Positions 24,139 through 64,000 of a stretch of 64,000 nt of DNA are shown in pieces. Each line of letters begins with the position of its first letter. Within the stretch, counting starts at the first letter, position 1. The DNA lies in contig NC_068988.1 of the NCBI RefSeq assembly GCF_001194135.2, forward strand, positions 84,215,326-84,279,325, given 5' to 3'. A program made the position numbers and the translations under genes. The DNA is from Octopus bimaculoides (lineage: Eukaryota). The notes beneath the pieces were generated by a model that was not told where the DNA came from, made no database searches, and saw nothing but the letters and a program-made list of their open reading frames with translations.

Positions 24139-24184
<46 letters not shown>

Positions 24185-24942: not shown

Positions 24943-24990
<48 letters not shown>

Positions 24991-24994
<4 letters not shown>

Positions 24995-26180
24995 GCTGTA
25001 TGGTAAGAAGTTTGCTTCCTAACCATTTCCCGGGTTCAGTCCCTCTGCGTTGTACCCTGGGCAAATGTCTACTATAACCTCGGGCCGACCAAAGCCTTTA
25101 TGAGTGGATTTGGTAGAGAGAAACGGAAAGAAGCGCGTCTTGTGTGTATTTGTGTGTCCATCGCCGCTTGACCACCGGTGTTGGTTTGTTTACGTCCCTG
25201 TTATTTAACAGTTCGGCATGAGTCTGGTAGAATCAGTATCAGGTTGATGATTTCGACTAAAAATTCTTCAAGGTGTTGCCCCAGAATGTCCGCAGTCTAA
25301 TGACGGAAACAAGTAAAATATAGGATGCACGTTTGCATATCCACACGTATACACCGAGTTTTTTTTTTTTATTGATGTCTACAAACTATTTTGTCTTCGT
25401 GCAGCTCTTAAACACGACCGTCACTTTCTCCACCATGTCAAACCTACTGACTTCTCAAACAGTTTCTTCAACCTTTCCGGTTTCTTTAATGCAAAGATGA
25501 TGCAAATATGGATCTCTCTTTGTTCCCCTCCGTTCTCTCTCTCTCTGTGCCTGCCTGCCTGCCTGTCTACCTTACAGATAAATTGTAAACAATAGATATT
25601 AAATTTTTGTGATTTGAGGCCCAATTCTTCCAAGTGTTTAGCTCACAACGGCATAGCCATAGCACCAACTACCTGTTGAAGCGTCGTGCACTCTGTGATT
25701 AAATTGTCTTAGGATCATGTGCGTTCATCTACCATGCATATGTTGTTACAGGTAGTGGTGAGATAGTTATAAAGATGTGTTAATGATAAAAAGGGGTTAG
25801 TGTTAAAAACGTACGTACATACATAGTGCTACATACGTACAATCATACATACATAGGACTACCACCATTCTTCAATTATCATCATAGGCGCAGGCGTGGT
25901 TGTGTGGTAAGAAACTTGCTCCCCAATTACATGGTTCCGAGTTCAGTCCCACTGCGTGGCACCTAACCAAAGCCTTGTGAGTGGATTTGGTATATGGAAA
26001 CTGAAAGAAGCCCGTCGTTTATATCTATATATGTCAGTATTTGTCTCCCCCCTCCATCGCTTGACAACCAGTGTTGGTGTGTTCTCGACCCCGTAAATTA
26101 GCGGTTTAGCAAAAGAGACCGATAGAATAAGTTCTAGTGTTTAAAAAAAACATGTCCTGGGGTCGATTTGCTTGACTGAA
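24991..26180 (+). mobile_element. Two SINE-B copies (24991-25322 and 25886-26180)
   Basis: tRNA-like head tggctgtgtggtaagaag...ggttcagtcccactgcg, body gaccaaagccttgtgagtggatttggtag, an internal microsatellite, and tail gcaaaagagaccgatagaataag. Other copies lie at about 3500-3660(-), 7660-8035(-), 12545-12680(+), 18600-18965(-), 28615-29025(-), 42110-42250(-), 57530-57690(+), 58965-59125(+) and 59820-59950(+). Confidence 0.85.
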
Positions 26181-26394
26181 ACTAGCGAGATACATTGTGT
26201 GTGTGTGTGAGTGTGTGTCATTTGGCATTGTAGAAGTGGGATTTGCAAAAAAGTATATTTTAAAATGTCACTAATCATTAATATACAGTGCTCATTAGGT
26301 ACCTTTTTCCATTTACACGATGTGTGTGTATGTGATATCTATCCATTTACAGACATAGTTTTCATTATACATAAAGAATGTTTGATTGCGTTAT

Positions 26395-26444
<50 letters not shown>

Positions 26445-26940
26445 TGTTCTGCATATGCATTTAAAGGGAATGTAAATTATCTTGCATGGCATGGATTTAC
26501 CAGTTGGCCTAGTTATATATATATATGACTCTCACAGACATTTATATGTATACTGGACAGAGAACAGGTGCTCCTATTAAGTAAACAAAGAAACGCGCGC
26601 GCATCATGAGATGATTGCGAATATTGTAATGCGAATTATTAAATGCATTTAGGGCTGTTATTATTAATGTTTGTGTTTATTTCATTTGCATTTTTTTCTT
26701 GTGTCGAGTAAGGCCTATAATTATAAAGCTTTCCATCCGTGGTCGTCTCGTGTTAAGTATTTTTTTTTTTTACCTATGACTATATTATCTAGCGTGCTGC
26801 TCCCTCCACTTAATACAGTAGGGTATGAACTGGTGGGTGAATTGACTGCTGCTTCTAGCATATTCAGCGACCACATGTGGGAGATGTCATATCGTCTTGT
26901 CACAGCTCCTCCCCACTCTTTTTCTCCTTCCAGATATATA

Positions 26941-27159
26941 CTTTTTTACTCTAGGTACAAGGCCCGAAATTTTTGGGAAGTGGGGTGGGGGCAGTCGATT
27001 AGATCGACTCCAGTACGCAACTGGTGCTTAATTTATCGACCCCGAGGGGATGAGGGGCAAAGTTAGCTTTGGCGGAATTTGAACTCGGAACGTGGAGACG
27101 GGCGAAATGCCGCTAAGCATTTTACCCGGCGTGCTAACGTCTCAGCCACCTCGCCGCCT
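26941..27159 (-). mobile_element. CpG-intact SINE-A copy
   Basis: Full reverse-complement unit ending tcgccgcctt. Confidence 0.85.
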
Positions 27160-27750
27160 TTCCCTCCGCATATATAGGCGTAGGCATGGATGTGTGGTTA
27201 TGAAGTTCATTCCCACTCACATGGTTTTTGGTTCAGTCTTACTACATGACGATTTGGGCCTTGTGAATGGATTCGGTCAACAGAAACTTGTTGCAATCGT
27301 CATTTAATGTCCATATTTCATGCTGGCATGGGCTGGGCATAATATACACACGTATACATGCGTTCATGTGTGTATGTGTATTTAACTTCTCTACTCCAAA
27401 TAATGTGAGCTACAAGCTATTGTCATTTCTCACATCAATATATCATCCACCAACTTTGTGCCTTCCAAAGACGTTTCAAATCAGAGATCTCTGACTTGTA
27501 AAACAGCTGTTTGCGAAAGGAAGGGCATCTGGCTGTAAAACAATGCCTCACTGATACATTCTGCTAAAACCCATGCTAACATGGACAAATGGACATATAT
27601 ATGTTAAAATTGAAGCTGAGAGCTTAGAAGATCACAATGGCATGCTCTCGGCTTCAGTTTTAATAATAATAATAATAATAATGAATACATATCCTCTACC
27701 ACAGAGGATTTTGAGCATTCCTTTCTCATTCTTCCAGCATTAAGCAACAT

Positions 27751-34299: not shown

Positions 34300-34631
34300 A
34301 ACAGTTGCTAGTATGTGTCATAACGCTTCTCTTTAAAAATTATTTCAATAATCGGCAACATAAAATAATTCGAGAAGCTTCAGCTTCTAATAGAATATAC
34401 ATAACTCCGCTTCACTTATTGAGTACTTCATTTTCGTTTGCGAATTTCTCTATCTCTATACGCATACTATTTTCTCCACATCATAACTATTCATTACACA
34501 TCACTCTTTCTGTCTCTCTCTTTGAGGAAGGTGTTACAAACTGAGGAAACTCAGAGTTTTGGGATGGAGTGAAATAAAGCCTTTTCTTCGAATTATTGTA
34601 TAAGCATTATTACATGCTTTCATTCTCCTTT

Positions 34632-34673
<42 letters not shown>

Positions 34674-35483
34674 TGCCTACTGTAATCACCTCAATTCACA
34701 CCTCCCCATTATCTCTTTCTCTCTTCCAGCTGTTAGGTGAGGTGTCACCTAAGCTGCTGCTGCTCTTACTACTACTGTTACTATGACTGGTTGTGATGGT
34801 CTGGCTGATCTCCTTGCCTCCCTCTTTCTGTCGCTCTCGCTCTGTTTTTCCAATAGTGACCACTCGCTTTTCTGTTGCTGTTTGTATTCCTATTTATTAC
34901 ACATTCAGCCACACATATACACGGACAAACGTATAAGACATTTTATGCAGGATGTCATTGATATTTGATAATCACTGTTGTTAATAACCTGAGCAACAAC
35001 GATAAAAATAATCCTGCAATTAGGGATTTTTGTTTTGAAATACAGTTTGCATTGTCCATCTCTCTCTCTCTCTCTGTCTCACACACAACAATTAACCATC
35101 GTCACCGCCATCACAGCTGTTACCACCACCACTATCGACGCCACTATCATCACCACCACGGTTCCCACCGCCACTGCCATCATTGTACTACCACCATCAT
35201 CACCACCACCACCACCTTCGGCTATGTTGTTCGAATCACAGCTTTACATTTTGCTACGATGAACTCTCAATGGGTCTTCTTCCATGTATGTCTTCTTCGT
35301 CAACGCAGTCATGTTTTTTCTTCCCTCTTCAATGTCAGGTAGGAAAAGATGCCTTGTGAAGATTTCCCCCACATTTCATTTACCTTACAACTAAACCAGT
35401 CTCTACGACACTATGCACCAAACCATAATTATATTGCATATTTTCTATTTCATATTTAATATATCTGTTTGATACTTTGCATG

Positions 35484-35526
<43 letters not shown>

Positions 35527-35737
35527 CTTTGTGTAAATATATGTGTATGTTGCATGTCTTTGTATGGCATCTGTGTATGTCGCTTTTATGCGTGCAGATA
35601 AACACTGTTTGTTCAACGTTATACCCATGTAAACATGAAATAGAAAAAATGAGACTCAACCAATCCACTACATTAAATGAGTTTCATATTGTTTGCATTA
35701 AATATTTTTGTCGGAACACACACACACACTCATTCAT

Positions 35738-35768
<31 letters not shown>

Positions 35769-35973
35769 AAATATATTTGCTCTCACAATTAATATACATA
35801 TATTGGCACACGCGCATTATGTGTATTCACACACACTATAAATAAGCATATGTACTTATATGTATATAAATATTATATATCGTGGATGTTGAATTCTGAT
35901 TCGTAAATCATAACGTTAATGTTTTTTTTTAGTTCAATTTCACTTTTCAATATACTCCTCGGAGCCGAGGCAA

Positions 35974-36011
<38 letters not shown>

Positions 36012-36480
36012 CACTCGCTCGCGCACGGACTCTATGCATTTATTATTATAATAATTACTAGGTAGTATTTTCGCCGAAAATTGGGTTCTTTGCATTCGTT
36101 TTATGTTGCATCCCTGTACGCTACAGTCTAAAATTCCCTGCCAAGTTCTACATTAAAATTGCCGCTGGGCTTGGTAAATGTAAAATACAAATTAGGAGGG
36201 TGGGCACATCTTGCCTTCGCTTTGTTTCTGTCTTCTCTAAGTTCATCACATAAATTGACCTGCTGCACAGCGTTTGTTACACACATTCACTCACTCACTC
36301 ACACATACACTCACACACACATTAAAGTCACATGTCATTGATTATATGCAACATGTTATATCGTGTCTGCTAACGGGATTCCTCGGGGTATGTTTATGAT
36401 AAATGAATGTCACATCTGTCATTTTATATCGTATCTACTAATGGATATAAGATGGATACACACATCCGTACATACATACG

Positions 36481-36500
<20 letters not shown>
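34300..36500. promoter_or_regulatory. CpG-retaining putative promoter/5' UTR region of FAK
   Basis: CpG is visibly more frequent than in the flanks. The region has CAC/CAT/ACC triplet low-complexity sequence typical of 5' UTRs and a strong acceptor (tctctttctctcttccAG, 34728-34729). Judged by eye, not quantified. Confidence 0.45.
35259..35338 (+). CDS. Putative upstream coding exon of FAK with alternative donors
   Basis: ATG 35259 with donor CAT|GTATGT (35285/35286) gives MNSQWVFFH at phase 0. ATG 35270 with donor CAG|GTAGGA (35338/35339) gives MGLLPCMSSSSTQSCFFFPLQCQ at phase 0. Both join in frame to the exon at 52202. The region is non-repetitive and CpG-retaining. Splicing is inferred, not demonstrated. 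Confidence 0.4.
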
Positions 36501-36534
<34 letters not shown>

Positions 36535-36729
36535 NNNNNNNNNNNNNNNNNNNNNNNNNNNNNNNNNNNNNNNNNNNNNNNNNNNNNNNNNNNNNNNNNN
36601 NNNNNNNNNNNNNNNNNNNNNNNNNNNNNNNNNNNNNNNNNNNNNNNNNNNNNNNNNNNNNNNNNNNNNNNNNNNNNNNNNNNNNNNNNNNNNNNNNNNN
36701 NNNNNNNNNNNNNNNNNNNNNNNNNNNNN
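36535..36729. other. Assembly gap (N run) between (TA)n and (CA)n
   Basis: N run. Confidence 1.
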
Positions 36730-36776
<47 letters not shown>

Positions 36777-36943
36777 ACGTTTTCATAACGAACTAAACAT
36801 GCGTTATATCACAATCTGCTAATGGATATTTCGCATCCATTGTATATGAGAATACATGCTGATATCCTCTCGTGTGTGGGCGTATCATAAATGAGCATTA
36901 CTGTAGATGAAAAAAAAATGTAATAACCCCTACACACACACAC

Positions 36944-36982
<39 letters not shown>

Positions 36983-38134
36983 ATTTTAGAGATATCAAAT
37001 AATACATTCGAGTTCTTGTGATGTCTCATGTATATGGATACATTTCTATCAAGTTTGGGTATTTTGTCAACAGTTCCAATATGCTGAGAATTTAGTGCTC
37101 TCTGTTACCAGAAGAGTGATTCAACACCTGCAGTTGGACGATAAAAAAAAAAAAAGACTGATATATTTCTATGGGATGCTGCTATTGCATTCAAAATCAT
37201 TGGGTTTTTTTTATTGGTTTTTCATAACTGTTTCTTTGTAACACCTTCCCTCCCACTGTTTGTCTCTGTAACGTCCCTGCGTTTTTTGCCTTTGTGACAA
37301 CTAAGAGAATTGTGTGTGTATATAGATATCTGTAAGCATGTTTGTGTGTGTATACACACACACACATGTGTATGTGTGTGTGTACTTGTGTGCTGTATTT
37401 ACATATACAATGCAACCTCAAATACAATGCCACCTATTTCTTGAACAGAAAAAAAATCAATATTTTTTTGTTTTTAGTCAGCTATAATGCTAGCCTCTCC
37501 CACCCCTCCATCGCAGGCTCCAATGTTTTGTATTAAAATTGTCACATTATACACATGTTGAAATAGTATGCATTGTATACAAGTGTTGCTTTTCTCCCGA
37601 GATAACTTGAACCAACTCTTACGAGTGAATCCACAGAATTGCAACAGTAACCAGCCACACTTGTTGATTACAGACACTTGTCACAGAGACCATCAGCCAT
37701 TTTTGTGATTCCAGTGACAGACACTATACAGTACACACACAGGGACCAAGCGATGAATTAATAGAGCACAAAGCCTGACCAGATACTGTAATGCATTTAG
37801 TCCCTGTGCTCTAATGATTCTGAGTTCAAATCCTCACAATGACAACTTTGTCATTTTGGAAGTCCCAGTACAAGATGGTGGAATGGCAGAATTGATATTA
37901 CATTGGACAAGATGCCTTATGTTATTTCTTCTGGCTCTTTCTGTTTTGACCTCTTGGATGCTGGACTTAATTCATTATTCAATTTAACACTGCTAGGTAG
38001 TGCTTTGATGCCTTTAGCACAGTTCATTCTGTTGCAAGTATCAGCTGAGATCTCTCATTGGAAATAATTTGCTCACTTCCTCTAAAGAGTGTTGGAGATC
38101 TTAAAAAAATAAGATCCTATGTACTGCTCTTTCC

Positions 38135-38335
38135 TCTTTGAGTGGTTGAAACTAAAACTTAAAAAAAAAAATCTTTTCTAATTTTCCATTTTTTCAAACC
38201 ACCTAATTGAGAATGGAAGAACAGTACCTATGATCCCTCATAGGTACTGTTCTTCCATTCTCAATTAGGTGGTTTGAAAAAATGGAAAATTAGAAAAGAT
38301 TTTTTTTTAAAGTTTTAGTTTCAACCACTCAAAGA
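38135..38335. repeat. Near-perfect palindrome (99/98-bp arms, 4-nt spacer TCCC)
   Basis: 38135-38233 is the reverse complement of 38238-38335 except at the poly-A/T run. Confidence 0.97.
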
Positions 38336-39989
38336 CTGATGGAATTACTTTCAAATCAAGGGCCTGATCTGAATCCATTCTCCAGTTGTCCACTTTACTG
38401 TTTAGGGCCTTCCATCCATGCATGTGGGTTCAGATTTTTATCTCCTCTGAACACTGGTCTGGAATATTAAAAGAACTTGATGTAAGATACTTAATGTAAT
38501 CAATAATTGTTCCAGAATTTCACTTTAGAAGTATAATAGGGACTTTTTCTTGAGATACTAGTGGGTACTGTTTTTGTTTTGGTCACATTGATTTTCATGC
38601 CAACCTGTGGCACACTTATACTTGAACTATCCGAGAGCTGATTAGACAGCCAGGTAGTTGTCACTAATTGCTGCAAGGCCTTAAGTTAAGCTCAATGATA
38701 TCTAGAAAATCTAGTAGGGCATTCCCTGCAGTTCAGTCAGTAACAAAGATGGAGAGCTTTGTAGATAGAACACAGTATGCTATGTATATAGTATGCAATA
38801 ATTTGATTCGCCAACTGAAGTCCCCGAGTACACTGCAGTTGACAGAATCAGAACTGTGTGAGTGAGAGAGAGAGGTTCTGCTTAATTGTTCACAATAAGC
38901 AAATGTACTGTTTATCATAGAACGTTGATAAAATGTTATTTTGCTTCTGCCTTTTTCTAAATGTTTTTGTATATAATCTGAAGGAGGAGGGGCAAGGGGA
39001 GTATCTACCTGATGTAGAGAACTATTCTCACATAATGTGTGTTCAGATACACAATATATCTAAAATTAAATAAATTGGCAAGTCAATACTGGAAACCTTT
39101 TAATGATGGGTCTGTTGGATCTAATTCTCACCTCAGCTTTTCTCCAAATGTTATGGCAAAAAACCAAATCTATTTTTGTTTCATGTCCAAAATACACTTG
39201 AAAAGAAAAACTGAAGGAAATTATGTTAGCACCTGCAATGGTCCACAACGAACCAAACCAGATTGTCCAGATTCATGCCACAAACTGTTGTTCTTTGGAC
39301 CTTTTTGTTTTTAGAGCTATAAATATCCAAATTATATATTTAGATTCAATGTTTCATTGAGCTGTTGGGACATTACTGAATGTTTAGCCTTCATGTACTG
39401 ATATGAGAAGTACATGTGAGAGTTATACAGTAATGGTCATATTTTGCCTTCTCTGGGCCCATGGTAGGATCTGCACTTGGTACACAGTGTGTGCACATCT
39501 TTGTGTTTGTTTCTCACCTCCTGACAGTTGTTCATTTGTTTACATTCCTGTATCTTAGCAGAGAGATTGATAGAATATGTACCACACTTAATTACTGGAG
39601 TCAATTTAATCAATTAAATCCTTCAAGGGGGTACCCCAGCATGGCTGCAGTTCATTAACTGCAATAAGTAAAAGAAATGTATAACTCCACACTACATGAT
39701 GCCATAAAATTAAAAATTTAGATGAGACGTGATGAATCTGGTAATTACAAAAATTACCTGATAATTAGGAAAAAATTTTATTCTGACCAGTAGTGAGTCT
39801 TTCAGTAGACAACTCATTTGTGTTAGGGGATGAGATAGAGGTCTTAGATGTTGGCATAACTTTGTTTCTTTTCTTTTTTATTTTAGAAAGGGGAGGGAAG
39901 AGGAACAGTGCCCATGACCTTTGCAGGAAAGCTTGAAATAATTAACTGACATTATTGTCTGCAATGTTCTGAAAATAACTTGCCAAAAT

Positions 39990-41610
39990 TGACGACGCAT
40001 AAAAATAATAATTTCTCCAATTGGTGCAAGGCCACACGTTTTAGGGGAGAATATATTTCTGGTAGCTGACTGATACTGTATTTTATTTTTAAGTCCAGAG
40101 AGATAAATATCAACGCTGACAAAATGTAAAACTCAGAATGTAACAGAGATTTAGTAATTAAATGCTGTAAGTGATTTTTGGTCCTGTGCTGTATTTATCA
40201 TTTGCGATAGCAGAATCAATAAAATACCTTGCTGTATTTAGTTGTCATCACTTTGTTAAATTCAAATCCAGTTCAGAGCAACTTTAAATGTCATCGTTTT
40301 AAAGTCAATAAAATAAAGTGCCTGTGAAGTGAGTGGATTGATTTCATCAACTATATCTCACCCTTGAAATTTATGGTCTTCTTCCTATGTTAGAAAACAG
40401 TTTTAGTATTAGAATGGTTGATTGGCAGAACTATTAGTGTTGGATAAAATGCCTTGAGGTATTTATTCTGGCTTTTTACATTCGAAGTTCAGATCAAAGG
40501 TCAGCTTTGTCCTTCATCCCTTCAGGGTTGATAATATATAGTATCAATCAAACGTTAGGAGTAATGATATTAACCTCGTCACCTCAAAATTGCTGGCACT
40601 TGTCCCTAAATTAGAAACAATTAAGAGTGATGGTTGGCAGAATTATTAGAGTACTAGCAAAAATAACCCCTGGTATTTGTTTTGGATTCTTGCATTCTGA
40701 GTTCAAATTCTGCTGGGGCCAAATTTACATTTCATCTTTTCAGGGTCAATAAAATAAATTTTAATACTGGAGTCACTGATATCAAGTAACCTTATTCCCT
40801 CAGAAACTATTATTATTGTAATTATTATTTACACTCAGAGGTCAAATCTGACAATGTTCATTTTTAAAGAGTGATAAGATAAAGTACTAGCCAAGTACTA
40901 GGTTTGAGGCTATCAACTAATCCCCTCACTTCATAATTAATTACTGGTCTTGTGCCTAGAGTTAGAAACCGTTATTAATCTGGTGGTGAATGTGCAGTAT
41001 TGATGAATGTCCAAGAAAATTTTAATTACGCACTTTAACATTGAGTTGATAAAATAGTTCCATTCAATGTCATGGTTGATTAGTCCTTTCTTACAAATTC
41101 ATACTTTTTTTTTACAAATTCATGCTTAGAAATCATTATTACAATGGCAGAAATCTGGCAGAAACGTTAGCACGCCGGGCGAAATGCTTAGCAGTATTTC
41201 GTCTGCCGTTACGTTCTGGGTTCAAATTCCGCCGAGGTTGACTTTGCCTTTCATCCTTTCGGGGTCGATAAATTAAGTACCAGTTACGCACTGGGGTCGA
41301 TGTAATCGACTTAATCACTTTGTCTGTCCTTGTTTGTCCCCTCTATGTTTAGCCCCTTGTGGGCAATAAAGAAATAAGAAATCATTATTAGGGCTCAAGT
41401 GAAGGGAGTGAGCTGACAGAATTGTTAGCATGACAGGCAACATGCTTAGTTGCACTTTGTCTTTAGGTTCTGCATCCCACTGAGATCAACTTTGCCATTC
41501 ATCCTTTCAGGGTCAATAAACTAAGTACCAGTTGATTATTGGGGTTGATTACATAGACTTGCCTCTTCCCTCGAACTTGTTGGCCTTGTGCCAAAATTTG
41601 AAACCATGAT
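39990..41610 (+). mobile_element. SINE-A cluster in the putative FAK intron (about 7 copies; young copy at 41146-41380)
   Basis: SINE-A motifs. The first copy (about 39990-40160) is inverted, and the 41146 copy retains its CpGs. Confidence 0.85.
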
Positions 41611-44600
41611 TAGGGCTTGGTTGAAGATGACACCAGATGACCCAGTAGTACCCTTTGAGGAACAGATGCCACTGTGATGTTGTTAGAAAAAGCAGGGTGA
41701 GAAGAGATTTGTGGACCAGAGGTTAGTTTGTATTGGCAAGTAGCTATGTGATAATGAGTTCGGTGATATTATTTTAGATGCAGTTTAAGATGCTTTTATC
41801 TTCCTATAAATTCCCATGTTGACATGTTTTGTCATAGACCAAGGAAGCAGTGTCCTTCCACACATCTCAGTTTTCATCATTTTAATGTATACTTTTCTAT
41901 GCTTGCATTGAATTCGTTAAGACAGATTTTCTATGACCAGGTGCCCTCCCTGTCATCAACCCTCATCTGTTTCCAAGTCAGGTAATAGTTTCCCATGACC
42001 AGACATATTTACATGGAGGATTGGGAACAAAGTGCATTGCTAGTTTGACACTGACCTCATTTACAACTCTATCGTGTGATGTTGAGACAAGGTGACACCA
42101 ATACACACACTGTTTACCAAATCCACTCACAAAGCTTTGGTTGACCCAGGGCTTTAGTAGAAGTCACTTGCTCAAAGTATCATACAGTGAGACTGAACCT
42201 GAAACCATGTGGTTGGGAAGCAAACTTCTTATCCACACAGTCATGTCTGGGCCTATATTACATATTACATTCTATAAGGATGCAGCTCACAACATGATGC
42301 TGCATCTATTTTATACTGACATGAGTGGGAGGATTCCTTTTGGAGAAAAATTATGACTATTTTGCATATTCTTAAGACAGTTGTCTTTTTCGGTACACCT
42401 TTTCCCATTTTCTGTTGTTAATTAGTCAGCTATATGTACAGATAGGACTGAAATAACTTGATAAACATCTCTACATCACCAATCATTGAATAAAGAGAGG
42501 TTGGTTATTGGTTTGGTTGGTTTATTGGTGTATCTTGTAATTATTATTACACCAATGTTGGATTTGTAGATTGCAACCAATCTTTCTCCACTCCCATGTT
42601 AGTTTGGATTGTTTAGATAAACAAAAGAAGCGAGAAGGGTGCAGAATATTGAATTGTAACTATTTTAAAGCTTTAGAAGGTTAGGGCTTCATGAGTTTCA
42701 TATAGTTTTTAGATCTATCGACTGCTGTATTCTCTGTTCATTGATGCTACATTGTTAAGTGTTTACCACTCAGTTATTTATACTTCTTACTATTATGTTT
42801 CTTGTTACCCATTACAAGATTATCATCCTGATTTCAAGTTTCACTACAATCATAGTGTTATGTTCCTGGATACAGCAAGATAGTTGTAGCCATGCAAGCC
42901 AAACAAAATTTGTCCTATCTAAAAACCAAAAGGAAGTTAAAGCTTTGTTTGCTGGTTGAGTAGCAAAGGAGAACAGCAGGTGGGATAGGGGTGACAGACG
43001 TCTAGTTTTTCTAAAAATCAATTGCACCGCCAATATATTTACACTTTTTGACAAAAAGCCATCTCTATTCATGCTGACATATTAAAAAACAAAATAATAA
43101 ATGAATGTAATTCATTGCTGCTTTAGTATCTTCGAATATTGAATTATAAATTGGTAGTAGAAAGATTCAACTATTTTTGCTATTTGTCATGAATTTTATG
43201 TTTATAAAAGAATGTAAGAACTTCCAATTAAAAACAAATGCTTGTTGGCACCATTTCATCTTCCTGCGTCAAACCAACTACAAAGCCTCTATGCAGCTAT
43301 TTGATTTTCCTAGAAATGGCTGCCAAATCTCTCAAATTGCACCCTATTTACTGTCTTAAAAATGGACACCTTGGATAAAACAGTACTATGTACACTACCT
43401 CAGAAAACAATTTGAATGATCATAGCTGGAATAGCTTTGATTGTAGGTCTGCTTAGTCAGGACTCATTTAAAACACAGAAAAATAAAGAAATGTCGAACA
43501 CTTATCAACATAAGTTCAATACTTTTTACTAGTTTACAATTTCCTGTGAAAATTTTGAAATATAAAACTGGGTTCAGTGACTCATCCTAGCATTGATTGG
43601 GATTTTACTCTAATTGAGAAGATATAATATTGCAGAGTGCAATCAATACAAACAGGAAACTTCATTATGGTTGCTTAATTTGTTAGAAATAGCAGTAAAA
43701 TCTGCCTCAAATTATAACCCTATTGTCTTAGAAAAAGAAAAGAAAAACAACAGGTCAGACATGTTGGATAATGTAGTGTTGAGAGTTGGTTTGACTGCAT
43801 CACTTTTGATCATGGATTTGCTGGATCAGGTGTGACTGGAGCTATAAACAGTGACAATAACAATATTAGATTGTGTTGGTATCAGAAACAGAAGACCTCA
43901 AGAAATATGTATATATGTGTGTGTATAAATGTATAAATTTTCCAAATGCATCCTGTCCATGCTAACATGCAAAAAAAAAAAAAAAAAAAATGTAAACTAA
44001 TAAGAATTTTAAAAAATCCCCAAATTGGGTAATGGCACATGAATGACTGAATTGAAAACATTTAAACCCCAAGTTTTTTTCCTTTTTTGTTTGTTTGGCA
44101 AAGCTGAAGGGGACTCAGCAGTGGGGATGGAGGATTCTATGACCTAAAAAGTAAATAAATGAGAAAGAAAAAAATGCACTTCTTCCTTGAAGCATCTGAT
44201 TCTTCATGGTAGAAATCAATTTTTCTGCCTTTCACCTCTTCCCCTTCCTCATTCCATATGGAACAATTCTTAAGTAGCAACTAGAAAAGAAAGAGCTAGT
44301 TGATACCATTGTTACTCAATCCAGCAGATCTTAAGGGAAAGGGTGGCAGCTGTGGTAGGGGTTGGATGTCCTATATGGTGATGATGATATAAAAGATTAG
44401 TAGGAAAGTTGGATCAATAATATGGAAAAGATGGTTAATGGCTGGATGAGGAAGAAAATGCACACACATTCACATAATGTAGAAGGAGTTTCAAATCTAT
44501 TAAAATTATATTTGAAGATGTTTTAGCAGGAATTTGGCAGATGTTTTTTTAATTTTATTCTTTGGGGGTTTCAAACAAAATGAAAACAAAAGCTTTTCTT

Positions 44601-45239
44601 TTTCAATCTTAGCCTCCCCCACTTTTTTCCCCCTATTTCCACCATTTTATATAATATTTGTTTTCTTTTATGCATAAGGTATTTAAGGTGAGGTTAGTAT
44701 TGATCTGCCTGAATGAAGTCCCATGTGAGTTGCAGCCAATGTTGTACAAGTTCCAAGTCTGAAAACAGAAAAGAGTGGGAAAGGTGGGGGAAGGATGTGA
44801 GTTTTCCCCAAGAATTAGAAATAAATCAATATTTTAGATTAAAAAAAAAAAATCTAGTCTTTGATTTATTTTTTAATCATACTATGATGACTATTTTTAT
44901 TTTCATATTTAAATACCCTTTTATACTAAAAACTACTCAAATTTCAATATAACATGTAATCCCTTGTCAACCAAGCAAACTGAGGTAATCAGTCATGTAC
45001 CTTATCTAGTGGCACAACCCTGTACTTGTTACATCTTGCTTATTGTGGTAACATGGGTGGGCATATTCTTTTGGGGCAAAGTATAGATATTTACATATTG
45101 TTGAAGCAGTTGCCTTCATAGGTAAACCTTTCTTCCCATCTTGTTGTTAATCGGTCTACTATAATTACAAATAGATCTTGCTTGGTAACTGATTTTCCAG
45201 TGGCATAAATGTATTAGTTGTAAGGTCTTGAATTCATAA

Positions 45240-45730
45240 CCCACATGGTCAATGATGTTTCAACTGTTGCACATCTTGGCTGAGACAATAAGATGCAAGT
45301 ATCAGTTTAAAGGTTCACAGTTCATACCACATCATCAAACTTTAGTCTTCAGCAAAAAAACATTTTAACAGTTAGTGGACAGTCAGATCTAATTTAGAGC
45401 TAATTCACTTTGGAAAAGAAGATATCTGGGCCAACAATTAGACAAATCTTCAGTTATCCATCACAATGATGACATCAAGCTGAACAATCAAATTTATCAA
45501 GTCCTGTAGGCACATCTTCAGTTGTTCAATATACTAGTGAAGTTGATGACCAACAGTCATACCTTTAATTGTCCACTTGAATGAGGATACCAACTGATAT
45601 ATACAGTCACATTAACTATATACTGTTACTATACCAGGAGTGGTAAACGACAACTTGCAGGCCATATCCAGTCCATGACCTCATTCCATCTGGCCTGATA
45701 AATTCAGTGAATATGTGACATTGCAAACAA
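45240..45730 (-). mobile_element. Decayed AP-endonuclease region of an RTE/BovB-like LINE
   Basis: Minus-strand IEQLKMCLQDLINLIVQLDVIIVMDN* resembles the endonuclease motif FY..LQ.L....PKxDVxIxxGDxNA. Heavily degenerate. Confidence 0.4.
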
Positions 45731-46904
45731 AAAATCTTTCGTTTTTTCATTTCTTTTCTTTGGTTCATGGATAATAAAATTTAAAGTAAAGTAGAGCAAA
45801 GTTGTGTAAAGTAGAGCAAGATTTCTTGCAGTTGATAAAAAAAATCTAAGTTTCTTCAGGTGCATAAGTAGTAATTGCTTTCACCTTCCTGAATAAATGG
45901 AATAATTGACTACCAGGGTCTCATATTAATTTATATGACTTATTGATTCTAAGAAAGGTGGGAGTGACAAAAATTGTCTGAGTAAAACAGGTTATCTAGT
46001 TGGTTTACTTTATTTGAAACTACTGTTACTCCCATTCATCTGAACTACTGTTTTAACCATTAACTATATTATTATAGTATAGATGTTATGTCATAGAGAA
46101 GACCTACGCATACACACTGATTATTAAGGTAGCTCTGGAAAATGGAATCACCAGTAGCATTGAAGCAACCTTGGGAAAACTATTAAGAATAAGGAAAGAG
46201 GGAGATACTTTATCTCTACACCATCCTCATCATGAGTAATAATACCAATGTTATGTACTTTCTGATGTAGACATAAACTTATAAACATGTTTGCTGTTAC
46301 ATAGAGAATATGAAAGTACTTTTATAAACATCATTATACATGTATATGATTTCTATAATGGAAACATTGTGTTGAAAGTTAATCTAACAGCTGGACTATC
46401 ATGGTTTCATTTTTATTTCTTAGTAGGAGGGCTTCTGAGATTGGTGAGAGTTGGGGAAGAAGGTATCCATAAAATTGAGTCTGGTCCCAAACACTAGCAA
46501 CAGAGTGGAAACCACTAAAATCATCGAAGGTGCCACATGGTGGTGTTAAATCATATGATGAACTAAGTCATATGATGACCATGTAGGTCATGGTAGGATT
46601 TGAACTCGGAACACTAAGAGCCAGAACAAATACTGCAAGACATCAAGTCCAACATAGTTCCACCAATCTATTATCTTGTATTGGGATTTTTTTTTTTTTT
46701 ATTGAGCTACAAAAGAATGGAAAGTGAAGTTGAACTCTTTGCACTCACCACAGGCTCAATATACTTGATTCAGGTAGGGAATGAATTAAAAATCACTTTT
46801 ACAGAAAACTTGATTTGAAGATTTGAAATTTCATATTGATAAAAGCCAAAAATGCTTTTGGAAATCAGAATCAAACATTTTATGTAAATGTATGTAAATG
46901 TATG

Positions 46905-47483
46905 NNNNNNNNNNNNNNNNNNNNNNNNNNNNNNNNNNNNNNNNNNNNNNNNNNNNNNNNNNNNNNNNNNNNNNNNNNNNNNNNNNNNNNNNNNNNNNNN
47001 NNNNNNNNNNNNNNNNNNNNNNNNNNNNNNNNNNNNNNNNNNNNNNNNNNNNNNNNNNNNNNNNNNNNNNNNNNNNNNNNNNNNNNNNNNNNNNNNNNNN
47101 NNNNNNNNNNNNNNNNNNNNNNNNNNNNNNNNNNNNNNNNNNNNNNNNNNNNNNNNNNNNNNNNNNNNNNNNNNNNNNNNNNNNNNNNNNNNNNNNNNNN
47201 NNNNNNNNNNNNNNNNNNNNNNNNNNNNNNNNNNNNNNNNNNNNNNNNNNNNNNNNNNNNNNNNNNNNNNNNNNNNNNNNNNNNNNNNNNNNNNNNNNNN
47301 NNNNNNNNNNNNNNNNNNNNNNNNNNNNNNNNNNNNNNNNNNNNNNNNNNNNNNNNNNNNNNNNNNNNNNNNNNNNNNNNNNNNNNNNNNNNNNNNNNNN
47401 NNNNNNNNNNNNNNNNNNNNNNNNNNNNNNNNNNNNNNNNNNNNNNNNNNNNNNNNNNNNNNNNNNNNNNNNNNNNNNNNNNN
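46905..47483. other. Assembly gap (N run)
   Basis: N run. A 10-N gap also lies at 21216-21225, flanked by a duplicated gccttgtgc. Confidence 1.
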
Positions 47484-47493
47484 TATATATATA

Positions 47494-47753
47494 TATATAT
47501 AAAATATATAGTTTTGGGGAAAATAACCAATTTTCAAGAACTCATTGATGAAAATCCACTATCACATATTATTATATTTATATTATTATTATATTATATT
47601 ATATTATATTTATCTTATGATATTTACTTTACTTTATATTATACTCATTTATTGTGCTTTTAATTATTAATTTTTCTATATGTGATAGTGGATTTTCATC
47701 GATGAGTTCTTGAAAATTGGTTATTTTCCCTAAAACTATATATTTTATATATA
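47494..47753. mobile_element. Foldback/MITE with ~76-bp TIRs and an AT-rich spacer in (TA)n
   Basis: Arms at about 47494-47569 and 47678-47753 with two mismatches; TA flanks; immediately next to an assembly gap. Confidence 0.75.
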
Positions 47754-47879
47754 CTTTATCTATAAGGCTCAATTTAATTTTAATTTTTTATAAATTGATT
47801 TTAATTGAGTTTTTTTACCTGTAATTTTGGATTTTGTCCCTAATATTATTACTTTATTAGAATCACTTTTCAGAATAAC

Positions 47880-48255
47880 ATCAAAAGATTTTTAAAAAAT
47901 CACCTTGGGCAAGTGTTTTCTACCGTAGCCTTGTGAGTGAAATTGGTAAATGAAAACTGAAAGAAGCCTGATGTATATTTGTGTGTGTGCACACACGCAC
48001 ACATGCATGCTACTCTCGCTTTGCCCTAACATCATGTGATAGTTGTAAGCAAGCGTCACCATTATGCAAGTAGTGTTCTTTGTTTCTAATTTTCCAAGAC
48101 ATTGTCTGGTAACGGGAAATATTACTTTACTTGGAAACAAGTGAGGGATCGCAGCATAAAGGGCATCCAACTGTAGAAAATCCACCTCAACAAATTCTGT
48201 CTTACTTATGCAAGTATGGAAAAGCAGACATTAAAATGATGATGATGATGATATT
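47880..48255 (+). mobile_element. SINE-B head with alternative 3' body ending (GAT)n; related pieces at about 12230-12480, 41860-42110(-), 58185-58400 and 59480-59770
   Basis: Shared motif ggaagggcatccagctgtagaaaatctgcctcaacaaattc...catgcaagcatggaaaag...aaatgatgatgatg. Confidence 0.75.
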
Positions 48256-48815
48256 TCATAAGCACACTAAGAACTTTATTATTCCACAGTACTGTTGCGC
48301 AGTCCACTTTTAAAATAAGAGAATAAATTAGTTATCAAAAAAAAGAAAAAAAAAAAAAAGGATTTTTCATCTTCAGATGTGATATTACTTTTGTAGTAGG
48401 TATGTAAAAAAAAATTAATTTCCTAAGGATGCAGGTGGGAGAGCATAGGGAAGGTTGGGAACACACTAAACAAAGTGGACTGTCTTAGTCACATGGCACA
48501 TGTTTACATCTCGGTAGACTGGGCTATCACCTAGTATCTATATTATATACAGCTAGGTGGACTGGCCCAATCTGTCAAGTGCCATGACTACAGACACTGT
48601 AGTCATGGCACTTCCCCTACTCTCTTGCATTTCTAGTCAGACAACCTATTCTCTGTCCTCTTCACCCCATCCACCTCATAGTATCTCTCTCTTTCTCCCC
48701 CCCCCCACCTTCCCAATACATCTCTACTTTCCATCCATCATCACCATTACCAGAAATGTTAATGTTTTTGTCAAAGTATAGTGGTGGTACATTTGTATGA
48801 AATTGCCAGTGGACT

Positions 48816-48858
<43 letters not shown>

Positions 48859-49544
48859 ACGGCTAAATGTCACTGTAGGGACAATCTAATCTGAACTTCT
48901 GGTATATTTCTCTGACTCTCCATTTACTGCAGCCCGTTGTTTTGTTTCAGACAGAAACCACACCTTTTTGCCTTTGGAGGGTGGCAGTGGAATTTGTATT
49001 TGTTTGTGTAAAGCTGTGTCTGCGTGTGTGTGTGCACCAGTGCAGTGTATGTATGTATGTATGTATGTATGTATCTTTCCATATGCATGTATCAGTGACG
49101 TGTGTATGGCTGTGCGTATGCCTCTGTGTGTATGTAAGTCTGTGTCCATGTATGTCTGAATGCGCTTGCCTCCTGGTGTATATGTGAGTCTGCATGAATG
49201 TACCCTACTAATAATGCTATAAAACACACTATCTCCCTTCCCCTTTTATTCGAGCAAGTATTCTCCAAGATCTTTTTTTCTCTTTTTTTTTTTTTTTACT
49301 ATAACTGGTTGGGTGGGGAAAATATGTCGAAAAATCCAAGTGTACTCACTGTATTAGATGGTTATGAAGGTTAGTATTTGTCACTTGAACTGGCAGGTCT
49401 CCCCCATTTGAGGATACCTTCTTCGTGCCATTCCACCAGTCTCAGAAGCCCTTTTAAACAACTTTCTGCTCAGTGAGAGTGGAGATAGGGGAATGTAGTA
49501 CAAGGGTATACAAAGGCTCAGTCACCAGGTATGTGTTAGTGCAA

Positions 49545-50140
49545 TAATAATTCTTTCTATTATAGGTGCAAGGCTTGAAATATTGACGGAGGGAGCTACT
49601 TGGCTACATCAGCCACAATGCTCAACTGTTACCTACTTCATTGCCTCAAAAGGATGAGAACAAAGTTGACCTTAACAGCATCTGGAGTTGAAAGAAATAC
49701 TGATAAACATTTTGTCTGATGTACTAATGATTCTTCCAGCTCACTGCCTTAATAAAAATAATTTCAAATTTTGGTACAAGGCCAGCAATTTCAGGGAAGG
49801 GGCCTAGTCAATTACATCAATCCCAGTGTATGACTAGTGACTTATTTTATCAACCCTGAAAGGTTGAAAAGTAAAGTTGACCTCACCAGAATTTGAATTC
49901 AGAATGTAGAGCCAGAAGAAATGCTGCTAAGCATTTTGTCTGGCATACTAATAATTCTGCTAGCTTGCTGCCTTAATAATTTCTAAAATAAGCATGAAGC
50001 CATAAATTTGGTGGAAAAGGAATAGTTATTCAGTACTTGACAGGTAGATTATTTTGTTGGTCCTTAGGATCATTGAAGGCATGTTGGCCATAATGGGATT
50101 TGGACTCTGGACCTAAGTATTTCACAGCATTTTGTCCCTT
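49545..50140 (-). mobile_element. Three tandem SINE-A copies in reverse orientation
   Basis: Reverse-complement motifs (aaaggatgaaaggcaaagtcgacc; gaatttgaactcagaa; ctgccagctc). Confidence 0.85.
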
Positions 50141-50819
50141 GCTCTGCTAAGTCTGTGAGAATCTAAAGTCTTGGTATTAAGCACTGTAATCACCAACTGA
50201 CAAAGGAAAGGATAACAGACTGTATATACCTGGACCACATATCTATCTATCTATCTATATATATATATGTGTGTGTGTGTGTTTGGTGAATACTAGTTAT
50301 TACATCAGTATTTGGCTGAAAATTTGTGAGTTTTAGCCTTAAATTACTGTGCTTTTCCTGATTCACTTCACTAATAATTCAGCACCCTTAATGCTCAAAA
50401 TTATTTCACGTTTATTGACCCCTGGATAGCGAAACAAATACCCCCTCCCCAAAGGTTAATGCTGACCATTTTGTCAACTTCTGTTCTAATTAAACTGAAT
50501 ACAAGGCAGAATGGTCACAGTCACAACACCTACTTACTGTATGTCTGCTGGATCAGGGGTGACTTCAGCTAAACAGCAATATAACACTGTATAACATTGT
50601 TAATCTGTTGCTGCTGGGTGCAAAGTGTCAATATCTAACAGTGAAAGTTACTTAGGACAAAAGCAGCAGATTTGGGTGGGGCAGTCACGGATGTTGGGTC
50701 ACAGATGAGATGATGCAGGATTGAGAAGAAGGGTGGTACATTTTATTTGTAGACATGTCCACGCATAGCTAAGTTCTAAAGCCCTTAACGTTTCAGACAT
50801 TGCTCTAACTTGTTGTCCA

Positions 50820-51242
50820 TAAGCGCTCTAGCATTTAAACCAGCCATATCCAGCCGAAATATTCTATCTGGTTTATGCTCAAACTAGCCAGATCCTGCTT
50901 CTTGCGCCTACTTTATACTGTCATTTTAAAAATATACAATCATATTATTAAAAATTCGAAGCTATAAGATAATGTATGATTAATTCAAAACATTGTTGAT
51001 AGATGGCAGAGTGATCTGAATGCTAAAGGGTTAAATCAGCTATATCCAGTCCAAATATTCTACTTGGTTTATGCTCAAACTAGCCAGATCCTGCCTCTCA
51101 CACCTATTTTACACTGTCATTCTAAAAATATATAACCATCTCATTAAAAATTGAAAGCTATGAGATGATGCATGACTTAATTCAAAACAATGTGAATAAA
51201 TAAGCGTTACATTGGACAATAATCTGAATGCTAAAGGGGTAA
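50820..51242 (-). mobile_element. Two tandem piggyBac-type MITE copies
   Basis: Two ~210-bp homologous units, each ending AATGCTAAAGGG(T/G)TAA (51034 and 51242). Confidence 0.8.
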
Positions 51243-52201
51243 GGAACAGTGAAATAACCAGGATTAAAATTCCAAATACAGCTGATGTTTTATACATTTG
51301 AAACAAGGCATTTTGTCCTACATAGCCTCTGTTCACCTAAAAATTTATACTAAAGATACCAGATCAGATGTTAATAACAATACTATAGGTACCAGATAAT
51401 TTGGGATGTTAATAATGTGCTATCTCTGTCCTCCAGTAAAAAAAAAAATGCTTCTCAATTCTATGACCTCTGCTCTACTTCTCCACACTGACCTATTGGG
51501 TAGTAAATGTTAAAATGTTCATACTAATTAGGTCTTATATCACAAAAAAATATTCTCTAAATAGTCTTATAAAGAATGTATTAAAACTTTTTTTTAACAC
51601 TGATATTTTTTTAACTGCTTTATCAAAGGGTTTATAGCTAGCTCATCTGTGAATAACAGTGCTACACTAATTTCTTTTCAAATAACTTAAATATGTTCAA
51701 TATAAACTAAAATCAAAATGACATTTCTGTGACATATCGTAAAAAGAAGAAAATAAAAAAAAAGCATTAATGAGACAAACAATCACGTTTTCTTCTCATG
51801 GCTGTTGGGTTTGTTATACAGAGGCTGCTTTTTACATTTTATATGCTGTTATACATAGGCTGTTCTTTGCATTTTATGTGATACAATGTCATCTACTCAG
51901 TGGTTCAGCACATTTGTCATCCTCTTTCTCTCAAGCTAATATTTCTCACTCCCTCATTCTCACTGTCCTCCACATTCTCTCTTTCCCTTTCACATTTTTC
52001 ACTTTCTAAACACATGTGTATGCACAAATAACACAGCTGTAGATACTCCTAAAAATAAATTAGGCTGATTACAGTTGAAATATGGTTTGATCATAGGTCT
52101 GTTTGATCATTATTGATCTTGGGCTAAACTACATTTGATTTTATGATACATGATTTGTTATGAATCAATATTTATTATTTTTTTTTTTTTCCCCATTTCA
52201 G

Positions 52202-52423
52202 ATTGCTCAATGGAGTAAACTGTGGCGTTTGATTCAGGGCAGTGACTGTGACACATGTCGAGACTTGGGTGTTGATTTGGCACCCAGTGGTGCTTCTTCT
52301 CAGCTAGATCAAGAGCTTGATCACAGAGTGAAGCGTTTTCTGATGGAGCGTCATATACTTCGCATCCATCTTCCAAATGGAGGATTCAGTATGGTGAAAT
52401 ATGGCGATGCAACCGACATTAAG
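52202..52423 (+). CDS. PTK2: Focal adhesion kinase (FAK/PTK2) exon encoding the N-terminal start of the FERM domain
   Basis: Seen: polypyrimidine tract plus CAG acceptor (AG 52200-52201) and AAG|GTAAAT donor (GT 52424-52425). The 222 nt give 74 open codons ending MERHILRIHLPNGGFSMVKYGDATDIK. Knowledge (from memory): this matches the FAK FERM start (human MERVLKVFHYF...IIRHGDATDVR; invertebrate L(K/R)VHLPNGGFNxVKYGDATDIK), with a phase-0 intron after DATDxK/R. ATG at 52343 may be the conserved start. No further FAK exon was found before 64000. Confidence 0.88.
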
Positions 52424-61986: not shown

Positions 61987-64000
61987 TAGTGGTTCTCAAA
62001 CTTTTCAAAAAATTTTATATGCTAGTCCCCTTACTGTTTTTTTGTTGATTTGTGGTCCCTTATTAAATGCAGGATAATTAACATGGAAAAAATGACATAC
62101 ATTTGTGTACCATAATTTCCAGACTATGAACTGCACTGCCCATAGACCTACAATCTATTCCACACAATACCCCATTGAGATACACATGAAAATATGGGGA
62201 ATCAGTTGATCAATTTGTTACAAAACAAATGAGAAATGAAAACAGTTCAAAAATATTCCCCGCATCCAATATTAACAACTGCATAAGACCCATTTATGCC
62301 CATTTGGTAGAAAGAAACCACAGGTCATACATTGAAAACTACGGTATATATATGTACATAACTGTGGTTCTTGAACTTTTAGCATCACCTTCCCCTTTCA
62401 CCGTGTTTGAGATGTTATTCCTCCCCATTGTCAGGTCATTCCTCATATTGATTATCCAAGAGGTGTATTTCAACCAATTTAGCTATTTTCAACAGAAGAA
62501 TTTTAATAACATCCCAAAATGTACAGAAGTTTCGACCAATTGGACCACTAGTATGCACAGAAAACCACAATTTTATTAGAACCATTTTCTTCTCCTCCCC
62601 TGAAGGTTTGCCATCCTTTTTCCTGAATCCCTAATACATAACATAACAAAAATTATATAAGAATTTATTTATTCACAAAAGCAGATCAACTGTTGTTTTA
62701 TTTTCAGTAAGGTAACCAGCTCTTCTATGTTTGGTTCTGTTTTAAAGAGGGCAACCCTCATTTCTGGTGTGACATCCAGTCAATTTCGTGACTTCATTTT
62801 GATAGCAAAGAGAGTGGAAAATGCAGTCTCACACTCGTATGTGGTTGGAAATGGCATCAGTACTTTAAGTGACATCTTTGTGGCAACAAGATATGACCAT
62901 GCCATTTCAATCCAAAATTTGGAACAGCACATTTCATGGATAAGACATTTTGCACCTCGATCATTGATTAAATCAATGAACTGCTCTTGAATTGTCTTCT
63001 GTTGGCAGATCATTAACAGAGAGTACAAACAGGTTCCTGATGAAGTGGAAGTAATTGCCAAAGTCATGAAAATCAGGAAAATAAAGAGAATATTTCTCTG
63101 CCAAGTATTGACACGTTTCATGTGTTCAATGATATTGTCATTGACTTGAAGATCATTTTCATCAATAAACATGTTTAAGTTGAGGAAAAGATGCAAAGTT
63201 CTTTCTATCCAACTAGGGGTGCCAAAGTTCAAGCTTCATTTTGAAAACAGTTTTTCATGAGAATGAAGCATGATTATATCTTTCCCTTGCAGTGAAAGAT
63301 TGATGGCATTTACTGACTCGAATATGACCACCAAAAGTGCCAAGCACTTCAGAAAATGAACATCAGAGAATCTGGTGTGCAAATCTGACTTGGCATCTTG
63401 CAAAATATAGTGGACTTATTTTCGCTGAAGGAGGACCCTCTTCATTATTTTTCCTCTCAAGTGCTATAGAAACGTTTCGAATTCAAAATCACTTTCTTCG
63501 CACAACTCAGCAAACAGACACGAGTAGAGAATGTTCGCTTTGATGAAGTTCACCACTGTACACATATAATACAGAACGTTTTTTAACTTACCAGACATGG
63601 GTTTCACCATTAGTGTTTGTCGATAAATTATGCAGTGTGTACCAATTGCACTTGGGGATTTTTCTTTCACCAAAGCCTGAAAACCAGAATGACAACCAAG
63701 CATTGCCGGAGCACTATCAGTGCACACACCAATGACATGCTCTCTGTTGATATCATGTGCCTCAAAAAATTTGTCCTCTTTGTTAAATATTTCCCTTGCA
63801 GTTGTTTTGGTGCTAAGGGGTCCGCAAAACAGGAATTCGTCTTCCAGGTGATGGTTAACGTACATAGATGCAAAGTTGGGTTAAGTTGGAAACATCTGTT
63901 GTTTCCTCAAGCTGGATCATGAAAAAGTTAAGAAGCGAATTGTGAATCTTAGAGATCAACTGCGACAGTGTTATCAGATGGTTTAGTTATTCGTCTGCTA
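61987..64000 (-). mobile_element. hAT (Buster/Charlie-type) DNA transposon with inactivated transposase; runs off the window end
   Basis: Minus-strand motifs IQLEETTDVSNLTQLCIYVR, EDEFLFC, VCTDSAPAMLG, THCIIYRQTL, NLSLQGKD and LMPFPTTYECETAFSTLFAIKMKSRN, interrupted by stops, frameshifts and deletions. TIR TAGTGGTTCTCAAAC at 61987 is preceded by ttcTAatg (nnnTAnnn Buster target). Confidence 0.92.

Follow-up and report, generated by a model that had tools for sequence, protein, structure and literature searches.

By its sequence, the 64,000-nucleotide stretch of Octopus bimaculoides DNA analysed here (contig NC_068988.1, positions 84,215,326 to 84,279,325; called the window below, with positions counted from its first letter) carries the 5′ end of a coleoid cephalopod gene for focal adhesion kinase (FAK/PTK2), with the first two coding exons present. 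Both exons lie on the forward strand. The coding part of exon 1 occupies positions 35270-35338, where an ATG at 35270 opens a frame of 23 codons (MGLLPCMSSSSTQSCFFFPLQCQ) that ends at a phase-0 donor whose GT begins at 35339 (cag/gtagga, the slash marking the splice junction). It is followed by a putative phase-0 intron of about 16.9 kb (35339-52201) with two assembly gaps inside, across which splicing is predicted. Exon 2 (52202-52423) is flanked by ag/ and /gtaaat and consists of 47 codons that precede the FERM domain (IAQWSKLWRLIQGSDCDTCRDLGVDLAPSGASSQLDQELDHRVKRFL; 52202-52342), followed by the start of the FERM F1 lobe (MERHILRIHLPNGGFSMVKYGDATDIK; 52343-52423) and the donor aag/gtaaat. 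A first-pass annotation of this DNA had described these sequences together with two alternative phase-0 joins to exon 2, from ATGs at 35270 and 35259, and when the window was re-read directly the sequences, the coordinates and both joins were as described.

The identity of the gene was established by similarity searches. The whole of exon 2 aligned with FAK1 of Patella vulgata (XP_055956032.1) when the Patella protein was compared with the window by tblastn (E = 3e-21), and an exhaustive profile search with exon 2 returned Patella vulgata FAK1 isoform X4 (P0008; 1181 amino acids, 117 bits). By Pfam, Patella FAK1 consists of FERM_N_2, FERM_M, FERM_C_FAK1, tyrosine kinase and Focal_AT domains, and exon 52202-52423 carries what this alignment identifies as the beginning of the FAK F1 lobe. 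A Pfam scan of the 97-residue fragment encoded in the window gave no match when run alone, as expected at such a length. With an approximate human FAK sequence as query, tblastn matched only a 17-residue FERM core of exon 2 in the window, and neither human nor Patella FAK revealed any other recognisable FAK exon within it. Because Patella FAK matches only exon 2 here, exon 3 lies outside the window, beyond position 64000.

Homologues of exon 2 were then collected. A protein search restricted to entries of up to about 750 amino acids gave three genomic open reading frames (ORFs) from other organisms, to which the profile search added more. An equivalent exon with matching acceptor and donor was found in ten or more sequences, among them a Meretrix clam (contig L002, from a Meretrix sequencing run), the RefSeq FAK of Patella, a cuttlefish and further mollusc contigs, so that the extension is conserved in bivalve, gastropod and cephalopod sequences. 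The homologues have in common an acceptor (cag or aag directly before [IV]A[RQ]WS) and a donor that follows DATD[IV]K; they keep a single reading frame, and the indels between them are in frame, with lengths differing by whole codons only. In none of the species compared does the extension contain an ATG ahead of the MER or MDR codon at which the FERM part begins; since the extension is nevertheless coding, the start codon must sit in an upstream exon. Synonymous and replacement divergence (pS and pN) were estimated by Nei-Gojobori counts. Across the compared sequences, the first 19 codons of the extension gave pN of 0.02-0.16 against pS of 0.5-1.0. For pairs that include the window, synonymous sites were saturated (pS about 0.8), and pN of the first 19 codons (0.14-0.16) was no higher than that of the FERM part. 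Between the window and the cuttlefish, pS was 0.63 and pN 0.11 for the extension, and 0.66 and 0.09, respectively, for the whole of exon 2. On these comparisons the extension is almost certainly coding sequence. The first-pass annotation had raised a genuine N-terminal coding extension as a possibility and had named cuttlefish and bivalve sequences and a substitution test as the way to examine it; the frame is kept, the splice sites are shared and replacement sites are conserved across molluscs. As the pre-FERM segment is common to molluscs, we infer that it is older than their divergence.

The extension contains a tryptophan-rich, basic amphipathic motif (IAQWSKLWRLIQ; hydrophobic moment 0.54, net charge +2), followed by one or two conserved cysteines (DCDTC in the window), an acidic linker and a VKRFL helix. 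The motif IA[QR]WS[KR]LW..I is kept in the bivalve, the gastropod and the cephalopods. AlphaFold2 was applied to the Patella extension and FERM domain, in a construct that does not include the kinase domain. The FERM domain was modelled with a predicted local distance difference test score (pLDDT) above 90, and the ARWS helix was left below 50 and undocked, for which reason no structural mechanism can be claimed for the tryptophan-rich helix. Exon-2 homologues of FAK were also observed in three metagenome contigs (L006 517-825, L007 55-261 and L009 3952-4089), where the exon starts cag/VPPWPE[VI]W and runs on into a segment rich in Ser and Arg; near its start it has W-x3-W spacing, as in the mollusc ARWSKLW motif. 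These sequences hint at a possible origin of the pre-FERM module before the molluscs. The metagenome scan yielded more exon-2 homologues and no cephalopod transcript.

The exon that would supply the start codon was identified by comparison with a second coleoid. The PTK2 gene model of the cuttlefish Acanthosepion (Sepia) pharaonis (CAE1317506.1), found in the profile search, starts MGLLPCLPCSPQSQIVSALRCQ/IAQWSKLWRLIQGSECDTC, with IAQWSK directly after the join. On the 46-kb contig that carries this locus (L004), exon 1 lies at 10001-10066 and encodes MGLLPCLPCSPQSQIVSALRCQ up to the donor cag/gtaagg, 14.5 kb upstream of exon 2, and the intron between them is free of gaps. When L004 was compared with the window, alignment was confined to exon 2 (78% identity, E = 5e-53) and the block of exon 1, while the intron and the sequence flanking the exons were randomised. 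The two exon-1 peptides are reciprocal best Smith-Waterman matches that end exactly at their donors (35338 in the window, 10066 in L004), with a score reached in 0-1 of 500 shuffles. The hexapeptide MGLLPC, which is present once in the window, is identical in these two deeply diverged coleoids despite different codons (GGT and GGC, CTT and TTA, CCA and CCT), all four changes being synonymous. Over the whole exon, pS was 0.76 and pN 0.27 in the MGLLPC frame, and 0.45 and 0.32 in the frame of the alternative start (MNSQWVFFH, from the ATG at 35259). With a generic donor matrix, the donor at 35339 scored 4.5 bits in the window and its counterpart 7.5 bits in the cuttlefish. On the forward strand between positions 1 and 52201, nine ATG..GT candidates in phase 0 have a donor at least as strong as this one, and 56 have a donor at least as strong as that of the alternative start; an in-frame join alone is therefore not beyond chance, and it is the conservation between species that singles out the exon at 35270-35338. 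No in-frame ATG lies upstream of it in the window and an in-frame stop lies six codons before the ATG in L004, so Gly2 would be N-terminal. An in-frame ATG at 35288-35290 (Met7) would, by leaky scanning, yield a non-Gly N-terminus (MSSSSTQ...); the residue is Leu in the cuttlefish and is not conserved. We consider it likely, from these alignments, that 35270-35338 is a genuine first coding exon, and the first-pass proposal of a start at MGLLPC is borne out by a cuttlefish counterpart that matches in start codon, peptide, phase-0 donor and distance to exon 2.

Annotated mollusc genes show the same organisation. In Patella vulgata (RefSeq FAK1, XP_055956029-36) and in the A. pharaonis model, as in the window, exon 2 contains the [IV]A[RQ]WS[KR]LW motif, the Cys and an acidic linker ahead of the FERM F1 lobe, uses the same acceptor and is joined in phase 0 to an upstream exon with an ATG. 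The Patella isoforms have three alternative ATG-bearing first exons (69, 34 and 18 residues), each joined in phase 0 to the IARWSRLW exon, and an upstream start exon is thus the normal architecture of this gene in molluscs; isoform X8 starts at MDRSILKV, the equivalent of MER. The records also differ, in that none of the Patella first exons has a Met-Gly start and one has a CCGC cysteine cluster, whereas the cuttlefish model begins MGLLPC and is fragmentary after exon 2. Neither the Patella nor the A. pharaonis records carry a note of a lipidation motif. The cluster in the longest Patella first exon (WFSVCCGCS) resembles an S-acylation site in appearance, so the kind of motif that anchors the N-terminus to the membrane may vary from one mollusc to another. 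Nothing in the window matched the peptides of the alternative Patella first exons, a profile built from the exon-1 ORFs of window and cuttlefish gave no matches, and exact look-ups of window ORFs spanning exons 1 and 2 returned no contigs, hence none derived from RNA. Only one conserved first exon was found in the window, with no second, alternative one; additional alternative first exons may exist outside the window or in its gaps.

A second feature conserved between octopus and cuttlefish is an out-of-frame ATG 11 nucleotides before the MGLLPC start codon (35259-35261; 9990-9992 in L004), which has an A at -3 and lies in the sequence ATGAAnTCTCAATGGG common to both species. After splicing at 35338 it opens an overlapping upstream ORF (uORF) of 36 codons that ends at the TGA at 52230-52232. 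In L004 the uORF is 35 codons long and has its stop at the corresponding TGA of exon 2; the peptide it encodes is not conserved between the two species. Such an ATG would probably limit or regulate initiation at MGLLPC, which would be reached by leaky scanning past the uORF, and it is the main caveat on the amount of MGLLPC protein made. The other out-of-frame ATGs listed by the first-pass annotation, at 35224, 52210 and about 52255, are present in the window.

MGLLPC (35270-35287) is a candidate motif for N-myristoylation at Gly2 and S-acylation at Cys6. G-L-L-P-C-M of the window, as the first-pass annotation had pointed out, and G-L-L-P-C-L of the cuttlefish both fit the PROSITE pattern PS00008, G-{EDRKHPFYW}-x(2)-[STAGCN]-{P}. 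The cysteines of exon 1 are C6, C15 and C22 in the window and C6, C9 and C21 in the cuttlefish, so that Cys6 is conserved and Cys3 is absent. A narrower consensus given in a review, G-x-x-x-S/T (PMC5492501), does not match, position 6 being Cys. The candidate initiator Met-Gly is encoded by ATG GGT at 35270, with which the conserved upstream ATG competes. Among the sequences compared, the window and A. pharaonis, both cephalopod, were the only ones with a Met-Gly start. In the mechanism proposed here, the short first coding exon (35270-35338), located in a promoter-like zone undepleted in CpG, would be spliced in phase 0 over about 16.9 kb to 52202-52423. The initiator Met would be removed and Gly2 N-myristoylated by N-myristoyltransferase; Cys6, and perhaps other cysteines of exon 1, would then be S-acylated, and the acyl groups, in concert with the adjoining amphipathic helix, would keep the N-terminus of FAK and its FERM domain bound to the membrane. 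A myristoyl/palmitoyl tether of this kind is plausible from the motif, and we put the chance that the protein is actually myristoylated at a little under even.

Palmitoylation of the SH4 type, in Src-family kinases and G-alpha subunits, usually falls on Cys3, and on Cys5/6 in Lck and Fyn. The N-terminus predicted in the window resembles that of Fyn (MGCVQCK, with a Cys at position 6) in placing a Met-Gly start and Cys6 on a tyrosine kinase and in the predicted combination of myristate and palmitate. It differs in having neither Cys3 nor a basic cluster in the first ten residues, there is no sequence homology, and the acylated segment leads into a FERM domain rather than into unique, SH3 and SH2 domains. 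It also resembles c-Abl 1b (MGQQPGK, with Pro at position 5), in which a short first coding exon likewise gives a tyrosine kinase a Met-Gly-x-x-Pro N-terminus; alternative first exons, which set the myristoylation of c-Abl 1b, are also used by the Patella FAK gene. In c-Abl, unlike the tether proposed here, the myristate is an autoinhibitory latch that binds the kinase C-lobe.

FAK is normally recruited to membranes transiently, through contacts of the FERM domain with phosphatidylinositol bisphosphate (PIP2) and binding of the FAT domain to paxillin, and forced membrane location activates it. Vertebrate FAK (PTK2) shares the FERM-kinase-FAT order, a short and poorly ordered segment before the FERM core and activation by membrane engagement. 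It differs from the predicted octopus protein in having no Met-Gly start, no tryptophan-rich helix and no start codon supplied by a separate MG...C exon. In human FAK the segment before the FERM core comprises about 33 residues, which speaks against MER as the canonical start, as the first-pass annotation had it. Its statement that canonical FAK lacks lipidation has been superseded by a report that ZDHHC5 S-palmitoylates human FAK at C456 and that this promotes membrane localisation (PMC10795333). Its other background statement, that artificially membrane-anchored FAK is constitutively active, agrees with the behaviour of CD2-FAK (PMC2120934).

The alternatives to this gene structure differ in how they fare against the cross-species comparisons. 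The first-pass annotation had itself cautioned that 47 open codons could arise by chance in a 5′ untranslated region; the extension lacks an ATG, and an open frame of this length in a single species is not rare. That reading has next to no probability left and was ruled out, given the low pN at saturated synonymous sites, the indels in whole codons, the shared frame and splice sites, the conserved IA[QR]WS[KR]LW..I motif and the annotation of the region as coding in Patella by RefSeq. More serious, although still improbable, is the reading in which the true first coding exon lies elsewhere (in a gap, outside the window, or in a second zone undepleted in CpG at 23.5-27.5 kb) and the exon at 35270 is fortuitous, having been chosen by a gene predictor in the cuttlefish as well. 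Nine or more ATG..GT candidates with equally good donors arise by chance, Patella has three alternative first exons, and the second CpG-undepleted zone does lie in the window; a coincidence would have to account for reciprocal best matches bounded exactly at start and donor and hardly ever equalled by shuffled sequence, for the single occurrence of MGLLPC, for the synonymous pattern of substitution and for the collinear position relative to exon 2 in both species. Very unlikely, in turn, is a genuine second isoform starting at ATG 35259 (MNSQWVFFH/IAQW) through the donor cat/GTATGT at 35286-35291, with donor choice as a switch. The join is in phase 0, its ATG is conserved and GTATGT is usable as a donor, but the site scores only 2.3 bits (position weight matrix), its equivalent in L004 (ctt/GTTTAC) scores -8.8 bits, and 56 candidates do as well by chance. 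Moreover, four of the nine residues are changed in the cuttlefish (N to K, V to A, F to Y and H to L) while the MGLLPC frame changes synonymously. MNSQWVFFH was accordingly rejected as an isoform, and its ATG is better read, on this comparison, as a conserved overlapping uORF or start-site-proximal element. Of the interpretation in the first-pass annotation, the coding extension and the MGLLPC start are therefore supported, and the MNSQWVFFH variant and the switch by donor choice are not.

Two further readings accept exon 1 and concern its product. According to one, which is unlikely but carries the most weight among the alternatives, ATG 35259 is mostly used, the main product starts at MER (52343) by reinitiation or from other 5′ exons, and the conserved MGLLPC belongs to an isoform that is minor or confined to certain tissues. 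In its favour, octopus and cuttlefish share the upstream ATG with its A at -3 and the TGA that closes the uORF, and Patella isoform X8 begins at the equivalent of MER. Against this, the 47-codon extension is under purifying selection in all molluscs seen and so is translated from an upstream start, and the codons of MGLLPC change only synonymously while the uORF peptide is not conserved. According to the other, slightly less probable reading, the exon encoding MGLLPC is genuine and its Gly2 carries myristate, yet the lipid acts mainly as an intramolecular latch or regulatory element rather than as a constitutive anchor, in which case the isoform would not be constitutively active. Purifying selection on MGLLPC is equally compatible with a latch, Pro5 is shared with the N-terminus of c-Abl 1b, and the adjoining conserved amphipathic helix and acidic linker could form a regulatory module. 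However, a myristate pocket is not known in FAK, several cysteines in exon 1 suit anchoring by myristate plus palmitate better, and AlphaFold leaves the extension undocked on the FERM domain, though the kinase domain was outside the construct.

The reading that best explains the observations as a whole is a FAK gene with an MGLLPC first exon, a pre-FERM segment, a lipid tether and control by a uORF, to which we assign a probability of about 0.6. A number of points weigh against it. Exon 1 comprises only 22-23 codons compared in two species, so its pN and pS are noisy. For the cuttlefish, the source of the join is a gene model made by BRAKER, in which everything after exon 2 is low-complexity junk, and more than half of the proteins in that A. 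pharaonis annotation have been flagged as inconsistent or fragmented (PMC13218726); the model itself is weak evidence, which the genomic comparison is not. PS00008 is a pattern of low specificity, Leu3 and a Cys instead of Ser/Thr at position 6 are permitted but suboptimal for N-myristoyltransferase, and, since the Patella first exons lack an MG start, the motif is not general to molluscs. The upstream ATG has a better context (A at -3) than the ATG of MGLLPC, which has T at -3 and G at +4, and would capture most scanning ribosomes if it lies inside the mRNA. Finally, the conserved helix was not placed with any confidence by AlphaFold2. In its most specific form the proposal is tentative: coleoids may make a natively N-myristoylated FAK, probably palmitoylated at Cys6, which would have been kept since the octopod-decapod split, with translation gated by the overlapping uORF, and with the lipidated N-terminus ahead of a tryptophan-rich pre-FERM helix that is common to molluscs and has a modified counterpart (VPPWPEVW) in metagenome contigs.

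Among the papers searched, none describes a pre-FERM extension in molluscs or a FAK that is acylated in nature, and the gene structure is already implicit in the Patella and A. pharaonis database annotations. The first coding exon described here would give the octopus FAK a Met-Gly...Cys N-terminus of an SH4-like or Abl-1b-like kind. Membrane-anchored FAKs are laboratory constructs, namely CD2-FAK (PMC2120934) and myristoylated FAK (PMC3206343); if the proposal is true, the coleoid protein would be a natural counterpart of these and a natural experiment on FAK autoinhibition under permanent membrane proximity. Independently of lipidation, a conserved mollusc pre-FERM module of tryptophan-rich helix, Cys and acidic linker has been defined, and it needs to be included in mollusc FAK gene models because those that start at MER or MDR are truncated. 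For annotation of the octopus gene, this analysis places the first coding exon at 35270-35338 and treats the other proposed start as an upstream ORF.

The surroundings of exon 1 were also examined. A promoter-like zone undepleted in CpG extends over 34500-36500 (observed/expected 0.5-1.05, against a window median of 0.18-0.19), exon 1 of L004 lies in a comparable zone, and the zone fits, as indirect evidence, a nearby promoter. The second such zone, at 23500-27500 (observed/expected 0.5-1.05), could be another promoter, for an alternative FAK first exon or for a neighbouring gene; no conserved exon was found inside it. The assembly gaps lie at 36535-36729 and 46905-47483, inside intron 1 and flanked by (AT)n/(AC)n microsatellites, and ten Ns occur at 21216-21225, upstream of exon 1. 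As the gaps touch no exon, no reading frame depends on them, and they affect only the length of the intron and the chance of a hidden small exon. An imperfect low-complexity run rich in ACC/ATC (caccaccacc...; 35100-35215) immediately precedes exon 1 and yields spurious His-rich and Thr-rich ORFs in several frames. The interval between 34.6 and 36.8 kb is densely populated by microsatellites of the types (CA)n, (TA)n and (TG)n.

In the cuttlefish, a 4.5-kb CT-rich minisatellite lies just upstream of exon 1 (L004 4837-9400), with units of 23-41 bp that each contain a CG and thereby inflate the local CpG observed/expected ratio. It is annotated as a gene of 1472 amino acids without a Pfam domain, a model that is almost certainly spurious. 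In the octopus window, Rfam and tRNA scans found nothing. Two ORFs on the reverse strand resemble transposon remnants: that at 63467-63880 is transposase-like by appearance, with no Pfam match, and that at 1-342 has a weak reverse-transcriptase match (RVT_1, E = 0.0014, below the curated cut-off).

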